Shown here piece by piece: positions 1 through 26,119 of a DNA stretch of 64,000 nt. The DNA comes from Vitrella brassicaformis CCMP3155. Taxonomy: Eukaryota; Protista; Chromerida. Numbering within the stretch: position 1 is the first letter of the stretch; every line of letters begins with the position of its first letter. The DNA lies in NCBI GenBank assembly GCA_001179505.1, contig CDMY01000424.1, positions 15,105-79,104 on the forward strand, written 5' to 3'. The position numbers and the translations under genes were made by a program. The notes beneath the pieces were generated by a model. It saw nothing but the letters and a program-made list of their open reading frames with translations. It made no database searches and was not told where the DNA came from.

Positions 1-287
1 GCAGCGAGTTGCGGGAGTCCCTCGCCGATCTCCTCCGATAGATGCACACACGCCGCAATGACGTTGCCCAGCCGGTCAGCAGACACTGACTGTCCATCGC
101 CATTGCTGCTCGCACCAACAGCGTCTTCCCCTGGGGCTGCGGATGTGTCATGATGTTGTGAGAGTGGTGGATGGCGCCACTGCAGCAGACACCCGCCGCA
201 GTCGGCGAGCAGCAACCACCATTCATCAGAAGCAGCACCTCCATCAGGGCCTTTGCTTTCAGCTGGACATGGCTGTGGCTCATCCAT
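1..287 (-). CDS. Possible 5' exon of a hypothetical protein that runs off the left edge of the window
   Basis: ATG at 287 (minus) opens a stop-free frame to position 1 (MDEPQPCPAESKGPDGGAASDEWW...), with telo-box-like motifs just upstream at 351-373. I recognise no domain. Confidence 0.3.
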   Translation of the reverse strand, partial: MDEPQPCPAESKGPDGGAASDEWWLLLADCGGCLLQWRHPPLSQHHDTSAAPGEDAVGASSNGDGQSVSADRLGNVIAACVHLSEEIGEGLPQLA

Positions 288-350
288 CTCTCTGCATCAA
301 TCAATGGAAGGATGGATTGATCTCTTTCGCTCGCTGAGTCTTCCCCTTCG

Positions 351-373
351 AAACCCTAATACCCAAACCCTAG
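351..373. promoter_or_regulatory. Interstitial telo-box-like motifs (AAACCCTA x2)
   Basis: aaaccctaatacccaaaccctag lies upstream of the candidate gene at 287. The regulatory role is inferred. Confidence 0.4.
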
Positions 374-512
374 AGTTCCCTTCCCTCTGGTACGACCCAT
401 TTGTATGTTAGTATGAAATCAACAGACATACGTGTCGCTTGTCCAAACATGAATGCACAAAAAAGCAGTCGCGCTGGCCGGCACAAAACTGTTACGTTCT
501 CACTCATTGCAG

Positions 513-1743
513 CTAGCTACAACTGAAGGACACAGCAGACAGAGACAAGGGACGGTGAAGCCCTGACCGGCAGCACAGCACATGAGCGTACGTCCCCACC
601 TTTGCATGGTGTGGCTTGCTGCCCCTCGCCTTGCGGGCGTCAGAGAGTGAAGGGAAGTCCTCCATATCGATATCCTCCTTCTCTTGGCCGTGGCCGCTGG
701 TGCCCCATGCTGGCTTGGGGGGTGCGTGCGGGTGGTCGGGTGAGGGCCGATAGCGCTGCACCGTGGCCCTTGCCGGCCGCTGATTGTTCCTGGGTCCATG
801 CTGGTGGTGGTGCATCCTGTTGTCGTTGTTGTTGTTGTTGTTCTTGGTGGTGGTGGTGGTGGTGGTTTTGTTCCGGTTGTTCTTGTTGGGGCCGGATGGC
901 GCAGACGGGGCGGCTGAGACCTTGACCTCGCCGACCTGCACACACAGACAACACAGACACATGCACAGGGAGCTCCGGATGAAGCCACTGATGCATCTGC
1001 TGACCGGCGTGGCATTGGGGCGCAGAATGGTGTCGAAGATGGCCTGCTGCCGACGTCCCCTGGTCTGTGTCTTGTGCATCAGCCACTGCCACAGCTGCCC
1101 CACCGTCCACCCATCCAGCGCCCTCACCACATCGGCCAGCTGAGCAACGCGTCGGTCGTCCATGGGGTAGTAGTGCATGAGCACCCCTGCCTGGCTGGAT
1201 GCCATCCACTGGATGAGGGCCTTCAGCTGCGGATCGCCGCCAAACACACCGCAGCCCCAATTCCCTGACACAAATCAACACATGGGAGAAACAGTGTGTA
1301 AACCATGGGGTCTTCTGTTGGTGGTGCCATCGACTCACCTGTTGCGAGTGCCTGGGTGTGTCCATCACCGCCGCCATGACTGAGGGCGGCATAGACCTTG
1401 TTGGTCTCGCGCAGGATGGCGGCCAGGGAGTACTGATCGACGTGTCGGTCGGGCGTCGAGAAGTCGATGGCATCGAAGGCCACGACATCGCACACCAACG
1501 AGCTGTCGTCGGTGCTCGTTGCTGGCCCGGCGCACCGAAATGAGTCCTTATACCCCTAAATGAGCCATCACCAGCACTCATAGGCTAAGTGGAAATGCGT
1601 GAACGCATCGTATACCTGATAGTTGGTGAATTTCCTTGTTCCCCTGATGACGGCCGCGTCGGTGTCGTTGAGTGGCGGGATGAGAAGCCGTGCGACGAGC
1701 AGCTCGGGCGATATGGCGAAGCGAATCTCCTCCTGAACACTCC

Positions 1744-1774
<31 letters not shown>

Positions 1775-2567
1775 GATGGCCATTGCCTCCACGCCCTCCC
1801 TCTCTGTCTGTGTGTGTCTGCTGTGCACCTGATGCGAGTACGCCCCCGCCGAGCACTCTGTTGGCGAAGTCGGCCTGCAGGCCCGGCGAACACTCTATGC
1901 GGTCAGCACATCCCATCACTGCCACGGGCAGCAGAGGGGCTGTCGAGCTGCTCCAGAAGGACGCCCCTGGAGAAGGCGTCAACGACAACCGCTCGAATGT
2001 GATGACGCGGTTCAAGTGATGACTGTTCTCTTCCACGGCGGTGGCCATCGAGCTGAGGTACAGAATGAAGCACTTCATCTTGGCCACTGCACTAGGGGCC
2101 TTGAGAGGGAAGAGGCGGCGGAAGTTGATGGTGCTGCTGTGGTGGCCCGACCAGTGTGTGCCGTTGTCCTCGTGATACAGGCAGAGGAAGCCCATAGCGA
2201 CGAGGAGGAAGCACCGATAGGCCGACAGCTGGGCCCGGTGCCTCTGGCCATCCAGCGTGTGGATGCATTGCAGAAGGGACGGGGAGTGCTCTCGCACATG
2301 CTGACACATCACCCGCACCGTACGCGACAGGAATGCCTCTCGGTGGTTGGGTGGCAGCTGACTGAGAGCGACGCGGAGGCCATCGAGGCGCGGTGCCGTC
2401 TTCGTGCTTGGACTCATAATGAGGCTGAGGTCATTCAGGAGCGACAGCAGGTCCCCAGCATGGGATAAACCATCATTCTCTGTCTTCCTCAGCCGCGCGG
2501 TGATGGTTTGCCATCTCTTCTCATCGCGGAAGGGGAAAGGAATGCAACCGGCCTTGCTGTCCGTCAT
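513..2567 (-). CDS. PARG: Poly(ADP-ribose) glycohydrolase, paralogue 1 (multi-exon, low-complexity T/N/H-rich C-terminal tail)
   Basis: Spliced translation gives [31 protein letters not shown] (GGG-x-QEE catalytic loop), FTNYQGYKDSF, VAFDAIDF, ILRETNK and ATGNWGCGVFGGDPQLK, all canonical PARG motifs. The start is uncertain (2567, 2582 or 2669) and the last exon is approximate. Confidence 0.92.
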
Positions 2568-2620
2568 GTTCACACATCCCATTTCCACACAAGGAGGAGG
2601 GAAAAGGGCTCTGGCGGATA

Positions 2621-2630
2621 TAAGCTCGCA
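2621..2630 (+). promoter_or_regulatory. TAAGCTCGCA element in the PARG-1/ART divergent intergenic region
   Basis: Same motif seen in five other divergent intergenic regions of this window. Confidence 0.55.
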
Positions 2631-2759
2631 GTTGAGGCGATCGGAATAGGAATATCGCGACTGACTCATTTCCTGCCTCTTCCTCCGTCCAGAAACGACT
2701 CCTTCTAGTCTGCTGCGACCAGATCTCTGTGAATTTGTGGTGATATCCGCCGTCTGCAC

Positions 2760-3373
2760 ATGCCTAACCCATCCTCGCGGCAGTCGACTGATGAGGCGTG
2801 TTTTCGATGCAAGGGGGACGCTCCCGCCGGCTGCGGGTCGTGCAGAGGCACGGGCAAGACAGCACATCACATCGTCTATCACGGCACCAACACGGAGGCG
2901 TCCAAAAACATCGACCTGGACGGCTTCTCCCTCAGCCTCTCAGGCATGTTCGGCCAGGCCTTCTACGTCACGGCCGACAGGTGCGCCAGCCCACGAACGC
3001 ACATCTAACACACTTTGAATGCAGGCTGTGTGTTTCAGGTCGAAATCTGTAGCATTTGCACGCCGGAAGGTCAAGCTTGAGGGCGGCCAGGGAGTGGTGT
3101 ACACGCTGCTTGTTGATGTGGGCAACATGAAGCAGCACAATGCTTCAGGCGAGTCGTCAGAACGAAAAGGATGGAAACCACGGACATGCAGTAGCTTTGT
3201 GTGTGTGTGTGAGCAGGCTGTTATGGTCGTCACAGGGCCGAGGGGTGTACCTGTCACGCTTGGCTGAATGACGGCTACGACAGCCAGTATGTGCCGCCCT
3301 GCCCGAATGGCGTGAAGCGAGAGGAAACTGCACTCAGGTCTGTCGCACAAATCAAAAGAACGCTCAAACGGGA
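2760..3373 (+). CDS. Small Gig2-like / PARP-catalytic-fold ADP-ribosyltransferase with N-terminal CxxC...CxxCxGxG zinc knuckle; 3' end runs into an assembly gap
   Basis: Exons 2760-2980, 3039-3148 and 3217-3373 splice in frame to ...CFRCKG..CGSCRGTG..IVYHGT..IDLDGFSLSLSGMFGQAFYVTADRSKS..VVYTLLVDVGNMK..AWLNDGYDSQYVPP..REETALR. This has the H-G-T, G-x-x-x-Y and acidic catalytic motifs of H-Y-E ARTs and a motif order matching the Gig2 family as I recall it. Confidence 0.8.
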
Positions 3374-3673
3374 NNNNNNNNNNNNNNNNNNNNNNNNNNN
3401 NNNNNNNNNNNNNNNNNNNNNNNNNNNNNNNNNNNNNNNNNNNNNNNNNNNNNNNNNNNNNNNNNNNNNNNNNNNNNNNNNNNNNNNNNNNNNNNNNNNN
3501 NNNNNNNNNNNNNNNNNNNNNNNNNNNNNNNNNNNNNNNNNNNNNNNNNNNNNNNNNNNNNNNNNNNNNNNNNNNNNNNNNNNNNNNNNNNNNNNNNNNN
3601 NNNNNNNNNNNNNNNNNNNNNNNNNNNNNNNNNNNNNNNNNNNNNNNNNNNNNNNNNNNNNNNNNNNNNNNNN
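3374..3673. other. Scaffold gap (300 N)
   Basis: Run of N. Confidence 1.
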
Positions 3674-5147: not shown

Positions 5148-7310
5148 TCATCCGCCGCTGACGAGTCTGGCCCTGAGTGCGGCCCCGTCACATGCCGCGG
5201 CGGTGGTCTTGTTGGCCTTGGAAGCTTGCGCCATGTTGTCCTGCTTGAGGTGGTCGATGCTCTTGTGGAACTGAGTGCCCTCCAACTTGTCCACATACAG
5301 ACAGGTGCGGGCCGTCACAAACAGCGCCTGCAGGACACACATGACAAGACAACGACACACACGTGGTGTGATGTGCTTTACCTCTGGTATCTCTCTGTCT
5401 CTGCGTGAAGGTGTGTGGTCCACGCACCTCCCAGATGGGCGTGGGGTCGTATCTGTGCAGCGGCCCCAGCACCTTCTTGAGCGCCTCTGTCGCCTCCTTG
5501 GCGTGATAAAAGGGAATCCTACAATGAATGCACAGACAGACAGAAAGACACAGCCTCACTCCACAGACGCTCATGTTGTTGTCCATGTCGCTTTAGGTGT
5601 GTTTACATACTTGGCATCGACGTGGTGCAGGACGTGTGTGCTGCCGATGTAGTGGTGCAGTTCATCCACCACCCAGGGGTAGGGACGGTCGATCGTAGAC
5701 AGAGCGCCCCGCAGCCACGTGAACGCATCGTCGCCATAGTGGGGGCAATCTGCACACACACACCACACGTACAGAAGCAAGGAACCGATAGAGAAACATT
5801 CTTTCCTTGTGGATGTCTGTAGGTTTCTCCCTCCCTCGTACCAGGGTGTGTGTGCTGCAGCCATGTGATGAGCACCAGCCATGCGTTGACGACGAGGTAC
5901 GGACCCACATACCACTGAAGCGGCAACCACCTGCACATACAGACAGACACATCCACCCACACCACAAGTTGCCATCAGTCTCAGTCCATCGACCAGCCAG
6001 CCCTTAGCTCCCTGCCTCCCTCCCTGACCATGACGTCATGGCCCCCCAGATGACATTGGCGGCGATGACGGCCCCGCAGCCCAGCCCCGATGCCGTCACC
6101 TTCCATCTGAAGTGCGGCGGGAACCTCTCGTTGTCGGGACCGTAAAAATGGCTGACCGGCCCATTAGCGGCGTCGAGGGGTTCGCCCCTGTAGTTGACGC
6201 GGCCGCCACCGACGGTCGACGTGAGGTACATGGGGTAGCCCATGAGGAAATACAACACGATCTCGACGATGGCAAACGCATCCTCTCCAATCAAGTCACT
6301 GCCGTACAGAGGGAGGGAAAGAATGGACAACCGTGTAATGAGAGAGAATGTGAGCTTGTCTGTCAGCTCAGCTTACGCCATCTTGGTGAGTTGGAAGGTG
6401 CTGTTTGGCGAGTGGACCTCCTCCTTGAGCTCGGGTGTGTAGGAGTCGCCGCGTGTCATGTGGTTGGTGAACTTGTGGTGCTTGGCGTGTGTGTACTGCC
6501 AGCTCCAGTAGGGCACCAGCAGACAGCTGTGGGCAATGAACCCCACGGTGTCGTTGATGGCCGTCGACTCCGAGAAGGCTCCATGACCACACTCGTGCGC
6601 AATGATCCAAGGACCGAACGCTATCGTGCCCTAATGGCATCAACCAACGTCATCAGCAGGCATCATGGTGCGGTGAGCTGTGTGATGGTCTGTGTGCCCT
6701 GCCCGGCTCACTTGCACGATGGCGTATGTGGTCCAAGCGAGTGTCCTCAGCAGCCAGTTGTGGCCGCACACCAGGGGGACGAGGTGGTACGTCAGCCATG
6801 CCGTCACCGCCAGGAAGAGCACATCGCGACTCAGGTACAACTGCACCCCACCCCTCCACACACACCGTGTCATGACGGCTGCAGTAGCTAGTATTTCCGC
6901 TCACTGACCAGTCCAGTGACGGCAGATCTCTTGCGGCAGTGTGGGGGGATGGCGTCATAGATCTCCTTCACCGTGGGCACCTGGCAACACACACGCAGGT
7001 AGGTATGTGCACTGACTGATGACGCCCCTCCCACTCAGCTCTGCTCGTCTCTGCATCGCACCCACCTTTGGCAGGTCCTCTTTGGCGTCCACCAGGTCGA
7101 GCGGGGAGGCCACAGCGTCCACATAGCTGCTGTCGCTCCTGCACACACCAAAGCACAAAAACAAGATGTCTGCTGCCTTGCTGACTGCCCCAGAGCCACT
7201 GCTGCTCACCTGACAGGCCGAGTGACGACGCGCTCGTGGATCCTGAGGCTGTCAGACAGCTCAGATCTTCCGCTGGCAGGGCCGTCAGACAGCTCAGGGG
7301 GAGGCGACAT
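5148..7310 (-). CDS. FAD2: Delta-12 (omega-6) fatty acid desaturase, FAD2-like, multi-exon
   Basis: Three His boxes: WIIAHECGHGAFS, WQYTHAKHHKFTN and HHYIGSTHVLHH..IPFYHAKEATEA. Also N-terminal PTVKEIYDAIPPHC and HYGDDAFTWLRGALSTIDRPY. Confidence 0.92.
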
Positions 7311-7408: not shown

Positions 7409-7556
7409 CTTTTTTTTCCGTCGAGTTTTTCCTATTCCTGCGAAAAGAGGAGGATGCTCATCGTCGTGTCAGGATCCAGGCGTAACGATTTTTGACGTCA
7501 TGTTCCCCAGATCCAGCCTCTTTCACTATTCCCCGTTTGCAACACCACAGATATCG

Positions 7557-9476
7557 ATGCCCACCAGTATTCCCGTGCCGGTCGGCCGCGAGTGGCATGA
7601 CATCAAGCAGGTGCTCTCAAAGATCACAGGCGGCGTGAGAGACCCCCTGCAGCTCATGGTCGTGCTCAAGGAGGTCCAGCTGTGCAAGCGAGCGGTGTCG
7701 GGATCCCCTCATTCATTCAGTGGCGTTCCGCTGCTCTTCAAAGGCATTCCACCCGACGTCACAGCGCACTTCCTCAACCACACCCTGCCCATTATGGCCA
7801 GCGAGCTGATCCGCAGCAACCTCTCGGCAGGAGATTTGCCACACTACATCAGCCCCGCGTCGCAGCACAGGGCTGTGGCGCTCACGGCCCATCAGGTCTT
7901 CCTGCTGCTGTCGGCGGCCTTCTTTGGCATGTATGGGCCCACCCCCTTCGACACATGCAGCCGCGACATCAGCGGAGCGTCCATCAACTTCGGGCCGCTG
8001 TTCGACTCGGTGCACAAGTCCACGGCAGCGGCCAAGCTCCACTGCTTCATCCTCTACTTCATCGCCATGGCCGCCGCCGTCGAGAGATCAGATGAGCGAC
8101 AGCTGCGGCGCAACATCATCTTCAAGAGGCTGGACGGCGGGCGGCATGCCACAGCCGATCAGTGGGCACAGTCGACAGCCCGTCTGCTGCCCGTGAGGGT
8201 GATGGGATGTGCCGACCGCATAGAGTGTTCGCCGGGCCTGCAGGCCGACTTCGCCAACAGAGTGCTCGGCGGGGGAGTACTCGCATCAGGTGCACAACAG
8301 ACACACACACAGAGGGAGGGAGGAAGGTCGTGCAGGCAATGGCCATCTCTGTGTGTGTGTGTGTGTGTGTGTGCAGGGAGTGTTCAGGAGGAGATTCGCT
8401 TTGCCATATCGCCCGAGCTGCTCGTCGCACGGCTTATCATCCCGCCACTCAACGACACCGACGCCGCCGTCATCACTGGGACCAAACAATTCGCTTTTTA
8501 TTCCGGGTAAGGATACCACACAGACACTCCTCCCTGTCCACCTGTTGATTTAATTCAGGTACGGTCGGTCATTCTGTTGTGTGGGTGCGTGTGGGAGCGA
8601 GCGGCAGAGTGCTGTGGTGGCACTCGATGCCATCGACTTCAGAGGCCGCTCCCCGTGGACACAATACTCGGTGGCCTCGCTGCTCCGAGAGACCAACAAG
8701 GCCTTCTCGGCTGTGAGCGAGCTCGAATTGAAGAGCCTGCCATTCGCGACAGGTGAGTGGCATGGCCATGCCTCTCCTTTGGGTGATTGGTTTGTTGCTC
8801 GGCTGATTTGTGTCAGGGAATTGGGGCTGCGGTGTCTTTGGCGGCGATCCGCAGCTGAAGGCCCTCATCCAGTGGATGGCATCCAGCCAGGCAGGGGTGC
8901 TCATGCACTACTACCCCTTCGATGACAAGCGCATCAACGGCCTGGCCGTCGTGTGCCGTCTCATAGTGGCGGCGGGGTGGAGTGTGGGCGACCTCTGGCG
9001 GTTCATCAGCCGCGATGAGGACAACCTCCACCGATACGGCGTCTTCAAGTGCATCATGTACCACCTCCAGCACCATATGCAGGTGACTCTCTCTGTCTGC
9101 CTGTCTGGCAAGCACCGACCCAAGCTTTGGCGTGTGAATGTGTCCTTTCAGAGTTTGAGTCATGGTGTCGGTGTGCATGATCGTCGTCGCGTGGGGGCTG
9201 CATCGCACTATGGTGCTCTGCCATCATCCCTGGCACCCAATGACAGCTCCGTCACCAAGTGTAGTACCGCGACGGCCTTCGACAGAGACATGGAGAGGAC
9301 GGTGGACCAGTGCAAACAAGAGGTGAGTCGGCAGGACACCGAGACACGTGGATGTCATCGATTCGATGCCGTGAAATGTGTGAGTCATTCAGATGAGCGG
9401 TGCGGGTGCTGAGACACGTGAGCAGCCAGAGGATCATGACGATGAGGAGGAGGAACTGATCTCTGGCTTCGACTGA
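7557..9476 (+). CDS. PARG: Poly(ADP-ribose) glycohydrolase, paralogue 2 (multi-exon)
   Basis: [59 protein letters not shown] and ATGNWGCGVFGGDPQLK. The start may be 7500 or 7557; the acidic last exon ends at 9476. Confidence 0.92.
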
Positions 9477-25159: not shown

Positions 25160-26119
25160 TGAATGGGGAGGCAGGCATGATTTTTGGCTGACTGCTCTCC
25201 AGGGACAGTTGGGTGGGTGGGTGGATGAGTGGGCGCCACTCACTGGGTGGCTCAGGACTTTGAGCTGTGGGCGCATGGCTGCCTTGGGTGGGTGCTGTGG
25301 GTGCGTGATGGGATGCTGTGCATGCCCCTGCATGCAGGCAGCAGGCTAAGCGGAGAGTGCGTGGGAGGGGGTGGGTGGGTGGGTGACGGTCTTCTTTCTC
25401 TGCACTATTTTTCGTTAGCTTCATTGGGTGACATACATACGTAAAACATACAACCAACAACAGCGTGATGCTCTTGATGATGTTCGCAGAGTCACTCATT
25501 CAGTAACGTACGTATTCAGTAGGTACGTACGTACCGAAGCCATCAAGACATACATACCCAAGCCGGCAAACACCATCCACTCAGTCAGTTCGACTCAACC
25601 ACGGTGGACGACACATCCATCGATGGCGCACAGTGAAACCTGCTAGAAAGGGTCAGGGAGTGGCGTATGTGAACGAGCCACTGAGCTGCTTCTGAGCTAT
25701 GCACACTCTCGCTCATGATTCATGCATAGGGCGACCACCCATGGACATGTTCTTTTCGGCGGATATGCGATGCCGCTGCTAGGCGTACAGTGCCCACAGC
25801 TACCCCACCCGCCACTCGCCCTCCCTGTTCTCGAGCTTTCTCTTCTTCCCCCGCGTCGTCTCTCTCTCTGCAAGCAGAGCCGCCGGCTGCCGCATCATCT
25901 GCCGAAGATGACAACGCCGCCCTGATTGCCAAGCGGGAAGCCGAGGAGGCCGACTATCGGTATGCCGTGATGTTCCAAGAAAAGGCTGATGATGGATGAG
26001 TTGGCAGCCGAGCTTCACAGTGAGGGTCGAACAGAACCGGGCGTAACGACCGTTGTACCGTACAGCCACATGTAAATCTGGTGTGATTTCTGGCGTATAT
26101 ATTTCCCAGTTCAGTGACG

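Follow-up and report, generated by a model that had tools for sequence, protein, structure and literature searches.

Gene Content of the Locus

Two genes of opposite predicted function in ADP-ribosylation lie head to head in the genome of the chromerid alga Vitrella brassicaformis CCMP3155, a relative of the apicomplexans. One codes for a small Gig2-like protein, a predicted ADP-ribosyltransferase (ART), the other, PARG-1, for a hydrolase of the PARG family. They were studied in a stretch of 64,000 nucleotides, called here the window, which is contig C424:15105-79104 of an assembly of 72.7 Mb and 1064 contigs. Each is a genuine gene that is spliced and expressed, and the two are transcribed divergently from one very short common region. 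The features are collected in Table 1, in window coordinates unless another contig is named.

Splice evidence was obtained from contigs of public sequencing runs placed on window positions 1-3373. Runs X6, X7 and X1 were taken as RNA-derived because introns are absent from their contigs, while X4 retains introns and is DNA. All introns of ART and PARG-1 are confirmed by spliced RNA-derived contigs. PARG-1 contigs are present in X6, X7 and X1, and ART contigs in X6 alone; this expression evidence is of presence only, and contig depths cannot rank the genes.

The even G+C content of the window (0.55-0.60) and the spliceosomal introns of its genes identify the region as host DNA. On these two grounds an insert of viral or mobile origin, which had been considered, was ruled out.

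Table 1. Features of the divergent ART/PARG-1 locus, its surroundings and the mini-ART/PARG units on other contigs.
Feature	Coordinates	Strand or orientation	Details
PARG-1 coding region	517..2582	-	Six exons, 566 aa; spliced contigs X6 and X7; P0173
PARG-1 exons	2582-1829, 1743-1616, 1555-1339, 1264-1005, 935-600, 522-517	-	Stop codon 519-517
PARG-1 diphosphate-binding loop NWGCGVFGGD	1233..1262	-	Aligns with ATGNWGCGAFGGD of 8adj
PARG-1 catalytic signature GGG-X8-QEE	1727..1850	-	Interrupted by intron 1744-1828; QEE codons 1735-1727
Divergent promoter and 5' untranslated region (UTR) between start codons	2583..2759		RNA contig ends and sequence
9-bp motif ATATCCGCC, copy 1	2613..2621	-	Faces PARG-1; a short way upstream of where the PARG-1 RNA contig ends
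9-bp motif ATATCCGCC, copy 2	2743..2751	+	Faces ART; inside the ART 5' UTR, 9 bp before the ATG
ART exon 1	2760..2980	+	ATG 2760; knuckles CFRCKGDA and CGSCRGTG; H41 codon 2880-2882; GMFGQAFY, Y69 codon 2964-2966
ART exon 2	3039..3148	+	Central beta-strands (VVYTLLVDVGNMKQHNAS); joint 2980/3039 in X6 contig
ART exon 3	3217..3373	+	C-x3-H-x4-C-x-C insert, W126, GYDSQY, REE with E147 (codon 3324-3326); joint 3148/3217 in X6; enters gap
Assembly gap, 300 N	3374..3673		Conceals last few ART codons, stop codon and 3' UTR
Probable fatty-acid desaturase	~5571-7209	-	Weak PF00487 match (E 3e-4); histidine boxes HHKFTNH, HVLHH
PARG-2	7503..9412 (approx.)	+	Inverted sister paralogue of PARG-1; Pfam-confirmed
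9-bp motif ATATCCGCC, third window copy	25758-25766	-	Motif count
Mini-ART/PARG units	C718 53/56k, 171/174k, 237/241k; C238 96/100k	divergent	Duplicated unit
Mini-ART/PARG rearranged copy	C718 229/231k	tandem	Duplicated unit

The Gig2-Like ADP-Ribosyltransferase

The readable ART product has 162 aa up to the gap. A single X6 contig (2656-3372) removes both introns, 2981-3038 (GT-AG) and 3149-3216, and its splicing agrees with the gene model derived beforehand from the reading frames. The second intron has the splice pair GC-AG (AG/GCGAGT), again confirmed by the spliced contig. Only a few residues can be lost in the gap, because the paralogues of this protein end 8-10 residues beyond the point equivalent to its last readable residue. 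A previous inspection of the DNA without database searches, the sequence-only reading, had proposed here an H-Y-E-type ART of at least about 160 aa. The spliced product bears this out, with YHGT (H41), GMFGQAFY (Y69), GYDSQY, REE (E147) and W126 all in place.

To which ART family does the protein belong? The whole spliced ART was tested by a local hidden Markov model; the structure, Pfam and database evidence comes from paralogues or from P0002, its closest full-length relative. A Gig2-like profile (alignment A4, 68 sequences, the window gene excluded) matched the spliced product with 104.8 bits (E 1.7e-34) over residues 28-157. In the same alignment the His, the Tyr of GxGxY, a Trp and the second Glu of REE vary little or not at all; H41, Y69 and E147 fall on H45, Y73 and E151 of P0002, and PARP4 has its catalytic Glu at the position of the conserved Glu. 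When 1.84 billion representatives were searched with the family profile, 2253 relatives were returned, 437 of them with E values of 1e-10 or lower. Among the named ones the best were GCRV-induced gene 2 proteins from fish, shark, lamprey and frogs, which often have 2-4 units in tandem (top Gig2 profile matches E 3e-80 to 1e-63), and the nearest relatives with a single unit were unnamed proteins in marine metagenomes, MMETSP and Logan. Outside Vitrella, every non-vertebrate relative was on a short contig of transcript-like or metagenome type.

Paralogous Gig2-like loci were found on contigs C409, C561, C646 and C314. The domain of the C409 paralogue is intron-free and matched the Pfam PARP family PF00644 with 34.9 bits against a cut-off of 26.7; P0016, P0012 and P0010 also exceeded this cut-off. 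The exons of the window ART, submitted singly, are too short and had no PF00644 match. The AF2 model of P0002 (pLDDT 91.9) was matched by Foldseek to the catalytic domains of PARP4, PARP2, TNKS2 (tankyrase-2) and PARP12, with E 1e-6 and probability 1.00. A feature search in Atlas gave weak ART-superfamily leads alone, with scores up to 0.87.

The sequence-only reading had also named the PARP, Gig2 and DarT folds for comparison. The outcome was a Gig2 profile and, for the P0002 model, a PARP fold, with no DarT in the top matches. Because profile, aligned triad and P0002 fold matches concur, the description as a Gig2-like H-Y-E ART is correct. The window protein is thus a predicted Gig2-family enzyme of PARP fold, with P0002 as proxy for the fold, and by its alignment a new non-vertebrate member of the family.

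Two Cys-rich elements mark the algal and protist subgroup of Gig2-like proteins. The first is the N-terminal pair of CxxCxGxG knuckles, which is DnaJ-like in motif only: for Pfam PF00684 (DnaJ CXXCXGXG) the window exon had no match, and P0002 (19.3 bits) and P0025 (25.7 bits) stayed below the cut-off of 32.7. The second is the C-x3-H-x4-C-x-C insert before the conserved Trp, at window positions 3219-3260 (ART residues 112-123). It is also present in P0002, P0003, P0010, P0012 and P0016 and is possibly an extra zinc site.

PARG-1, a Canonical PARG

The spliced product of PARG-1 is identical to the annotated 566-aa Vitrella protein P0173. All five introns are GT-AG (1744-1828, 1556-1615, 1265-1338, 936-1004 and 523-599; X6 and X7 contigs). 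Translation may begin at ATG 2582 or at the alternative ATG 2567. In Pfam, the protein matched PARG_cat_C (199.3 bits, positions 3-206/207) and PARG_cat_N (47.4 bits), both above cut-off.

Compared with solved PARGs (E 1.8e-47), the catalytic signature of PARG-1 aligned residue for residue, and GGG-X8-QEE fell on the GGGVLGHGCVQEEIRF motif of 8adj. The signature and ATGNWGCGVFGGD both align with this structure, which gives PARG-1 the GGG-X6-8-QEE pattern, the Tyr clasp (TNYQGY) and the diphosphate-binding loop (GNWGCGxFGGD), all intact. The claim of the sequence-only reading that the divergent PARG is catalytically intact thus agrees with the solved structures and with both Pfam domains. Judged by these residues, PARG-1 is an ordinary, canonical PARG. 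It has the same domains, signature, clasp and loop as the canonical eukaryotic enzymes (PDB 8adj, human 4a0d/4b1g, Tetrahymena 4l2h), and differs from those cases in being one of at least 12 loci in its genome, in its low-complexity Thr/Asn-rich C-terminal tail, and in its linkage to an ART gene.

The next gene on the minus strand (ATG at about window 287) had no Pfam match. A 2443-nt X7 contig extends out of PARG-1, past its stop codon (517), and into this gene (window 1-522 and C424 upstream, L022 6994-7392). The joining of the two may reflect overlapping UTRs, read-through or an assembly merge.

The Shared Intergenic Region

The start codons of ART and PARG-1 are 177 bp apart when PARG-1 is read from ATG 2582 and 192 bp apart when it is read from ATG 2567, in line with the distance of about 190 bp given by the sequence-only reading. 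RNA contigs end at 2599 on the PARG-1 side and at 2656 on the ART side, with 56 bp uncovered between them, so the two transcription units begin at most about 56 bp apart. A TATA-like GGATATAAGC lies within the uncovered 56 bp, at about 2614-2623, and may serve as the element around which both transcripts start.

The same reading had proposed a shared promoter motif. The 9-bp ATATCCGCC does occur once towards each gene, but the two copies have non-equivalent positions. Three copies are present in the window against 0.15 expected. We give this motif little weight, as its count was tested post hoc and its second copy falls within the ART 5' UTR. None was found in the spacers of the Vitrella mini-ART/PARG cassettes described below.

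ART and PARG Genes Elsewhere in the Genome

A second linkage of ART and PARG genes was detected in the same genome. It involves a family of mini-ARTs, about 110 aa long and of H-Y-E type (motifs YHQT, GGGIY and GDEYIVF), which is only distantly related to the Gig2-like family and has about 15 loci, concentrated on PARG-rich contigs. One mini-ART subclade adjoins clade-B PARGs; the two genes form a unit of about 4.3 kb, the duplicates of which are 70-90% identical in nucleotide sequence (locus labels L027, L031, L033, L034 and L037). The ART and the PARG of these cassettes both start with common Cys/His repeats (C-x-V-[KR]-G-C ... H-x-C-x2-C-G ... H-x4-C), which matched no Pfam family.

These cassettes resemble the window pair in their divergent H-Y-E ART and intact PARG. 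They differ in the ART family and in the PARG clade, which is B here and A at the window. Moreover, the cassette partners have private Cys/His repeats in common and were duplicated as a unit, and the window pair has neither property. Within one genome, therefore, two ART families and two PARG clades have acquired or retained such linkage. This second, independent linkage raises the prior for a functional pair at the window but falls short of proof.

PARG genes occupy at least 12 loci of the genome. Six are on C718, two on C424, and C298, C406, C238 and C385 have one each. Such an expansion is unusually large for a eukaryote, and it stands alongside the roughly 15 mini-ART loci and five or six Gig2-like loci. 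With about 20 small ART loci in total, the ADP-ribosylation toolkit of Vitrella is greatly expanded.

The second PARG gene of C424, which the sequence-only reading had placed about 4 kb away, is PARG-2. It starts 4.1 kb beyond ART and is not adjacent to it. The PARG-1 and PARG-2 proteins are about 59% identical overall and about 42% in their N-terminal halves. Two patches of their DNA are 93-97% identical (1155-1277 versus 8804-8926; 1628-1946 versus 8172-8492), and the patches include a (CA)n-bearing intron. Near-identity of the DNA, intron included, despite diverged proteins suggests gene conversion between the inverted copies. The ART/PARG-1 spacer and the sequence upstream of PARG-2 were found to have no long repeat in common.

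Is the Pairing Functional?

When 5 Gig2-like loci and 12 PARG loci were placed at random, adjacency within 3 kb was obtained in 0.5% of trials (p ~0.005). We tentatively prefer the reading that the window holds a true writer-eraser pair, in which a bidirectional promoter serves a small Gig2-type ART and a canonical PARG. A short promoter, with about 180 bp between starts and at most 56 bp between RNA ends, would drive both genes. The ART, built of a zinc knuckle pair, a compact H41-Y69-E147 domain and the Cys/His insert, would use NAD+ to place ADP-ribose on its target, and PARG-1 would cut ribose-ribose bonds, trimming or turning over chains made by this ART or by other PARPs. The two genes would represent one kind of writer-eraser gene pair among at least two that the genome contains. 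The data establish the gene structures, their transcription, the folds, the catalytic residues and the recurrence of ART-PARG pairs in this genome, while enzymatic activity, a common substrate, co-regulation and any stress or antiviral role are inferred.

The chemistry of the eraser sets a condition for this mechanism. Canonical PARGs cut ribose-ribose bonds and cannot remove the protein-proximal ADP-ribose. Full reversal would consequently need an ART that makes oligo- or poly-ADP-ribose, which an H-Y-E triad permits but does not guarantee.

Several observations weigh against a writer-eraser pair. If the ART is a mono-transferase, its mark could not be erased by PARG-1. ART contigs were present in just one of the three RNA-like runs. 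Head-to-head pairs are common in this compact genome, with at least two more in the window, and one of them joins PARG-2 not to an ART but to the probable desaturase, the likely start codons being about 300 bp apart. The window ART and PARG-1 have no common targeting domain, and the pair has not been duplicated as a unit. None of the contigs that carry the other Gig2-like loci (C409, C561, C646 and C314) has a PARG or Macro gene, so that linkage is conserved at none of the four other loci compared in the genome. Nor did the linked pairs that the sequence-only reading had suggested looking for in other genomes come to light: the sole external Gig2-like locus with usable flanks (L023, environmental, on a 31-kb contig) has no PARG within 7-10 kb (0/1). 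A related-locus search with profile A5 yielded three metagenome loci; all of them lack a PARG, and two also lack a real ART match.

It is a real possibility, then, that ART and PARG-1 are incidental neighbours, functional members of two expanded families brought side by side by local duplication or rearrangement in a gene-dense genome. They would have a promoter region in common, but no common substrate or pathway. That just one of the five or six Gig2-like loci adjoins a PARG fits this explanation, as do the inverted local duplication of PARG-1 and PARG-2 with its gene-conversion patches, the other divergent partner of PARG-2, the environmental homologue without a PARG and the lack of a common targeting domain. 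The window pair was, in addition, singled out post hoc among about 1590 windows. The nominal p of 0.005 argues against mere coincidence, and so does the second, independent and clearly non-random ART-PARG cassette type, which raises the prior of function. What the sequence-only reading had called a dedicated pair is thus only partly upheld. Chance adjacency is improbable and ART-PARG cassettes recur in the genome, but the word dedicated is doubtful because the other Gig2-like loci are unlinked, PARG-2 faces a desaturase and the environmental locus is without a PARG.

A second alternative concerns the ART itself, which might be a weakened or non-catalytic Gig2-like protein acting as a binder or regulator, with no writer-eraser chemistry at the locus. 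The window protein reads G65-Q-A67-F-Y69, and this too weighs against an active writer: the second Gly of the GxGxY pair in the NAD+-site strand, invariant in the 68 relatives (G71 of P0002) and kept in all other Vitrella paralogues, is here Ala, a replacement unique to the window gene. Furthermore, no Gig2 protein with demonstrated enzymatic activity appears in PMC3617106 or 10.1101/2025.07.01.662619. On the other hand, H41, Y69 and E147 are all present, the change from Gly to Ala is conservative, and the gene is spliced and expressed. By motif reading, S77 and F80 would be the counterparts of PARP1 S904 and Y907. Taken together, loss of catalysis appears unlikely.

Last, the sequence-only reading had invoked a toxin/immunity module of the DarT-DarG kind, with a toxic ART and PARG-1 as its dedicated antidote, by the general analogy of a transferase and a macro-fold hydrolase encoded adjacently; this is highly improbable, given a PARP/Gig2 fold and profile with no DarT in Pfam (E up to 10, paralogue domain) or in the top 50 structural matches, a canonical eukaryotic PARG in place of a DarG-type macrodomain, separate, divergent, intron-bearing eukaryotic transcription units in place of an operon, and paralogous ARTs that occur without an adjacent hydrolase.

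A broader extension of the writer-eraser reading can also be formulated. Divergent ART-PARG cassettes would have been assembled at least twice independently, and the one in the window would be an inducible stress or antiviral switch. Gig2 would then be an ancient immune-type ART of eukaryotes, older than its interferon-stimulated use in fish, and PARG would be its dedicated off-switch. We regard this larger scenario as rather unlikely.

Comparison with Known Systems

Gig2 genes are widely used as markers of the antiviral response in fish. The whole unit of about 120 aa in vertebrate Gig2 (GCRV-induced gene 2) is homologous to the Vitrella domain (YHGT, GxGxY, W, GYD..VPP, EE-x-V). Judged by the P0002 model, the "novel C-terminal domain" described for Gig2 in 2013 (PMC3617106) is the second half of the same PARP fold. 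In contrast to vertebrate Gig2, the Vitrella ART is a single unit, it carries the CxxCxGxG knuckles and the C-x3-H-x4-C-x-C insert which vertebrate proteins lack, and its host is an alveolate alga without an interferon system. The catalytic domains of PARP4, PARP12, PARP10, PARP2 and tankyrase share with it the fold, the H-Y-E triad and the aligned catalytic Glu. Here, the Gig2-like domain is shorter (about 125 versus about 200 aa), its identity to them is just 15-20%, and the protein lacks a helical regulatory domain as well as WGR, macro, WWE and ankyrin modules. Among vertebrate genes, human PARP9-DTX3L offers a parallel, as two partners of the ADP-ribosylation pathway are placed head to head at one short promoter. 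It differs from the window pair in that the partner is an E3 ligase, not an eraser, and that the context is the vertebrate interferon response.

The Gig2 family has been called specific to non-amniote vertebrates, and three algal expressed sequence tags and five marine Gig2-like sequences, noted in 2013, were explained by horizontal transfer (PMC3617106). Protists go unmentioned in a 2025 preprint about the gig genes of salmon (10.1101/2025.07.01.662619). In the literature searched we found no mention of a divergent Gig2-like/PARG gene pair and no paper mentioning both Vitrella and PARG. The remark of the sequence-only reading that such a system had not been described can accordingly be kept for the gene pair; for the Gig2 homologues it goes too far, as those of algae and marine samples had been noticed in 2013.

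The range of Gig2 is widened by this clear homologue, whose H-Y-E triad is intact and whose host is a free-living relative of the parasitic apicomplexans, and by the related sequences of marine protists. The Vitrella ART is also a small single-domain protein suited to testing Gig2 activity. If the link to PARG-1 is functional, the locus would present a writer and an eraser coupled in the genome, a rare case among eukaryotes; taken with the mini-ART/PARG cassettes, it would suggest that chromerids have an expanded ADP-ribosylation system for conflict or stress. The value of the locus lies mainly in this wider picture of an expanded Vitrella system with recurrent cassettes.

Related Domain Architectures

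Fusions of the Gig2-like domain with other domains were seen in two proteins. A TLDc fusion had been suspected for the C646 paralogue and was unconfirmed; TLDc is present solely in P0160 (Vitrella CEM27896.1, 994 aa; C314:78.9-79.5k), which combines a Gig2-like domain with TLDc domains (PF07534) in an ART-TLDc architecture. The other protein, P0015 (735 aa), has two Gig2-like PARP units and four ubiquitin-family domains.

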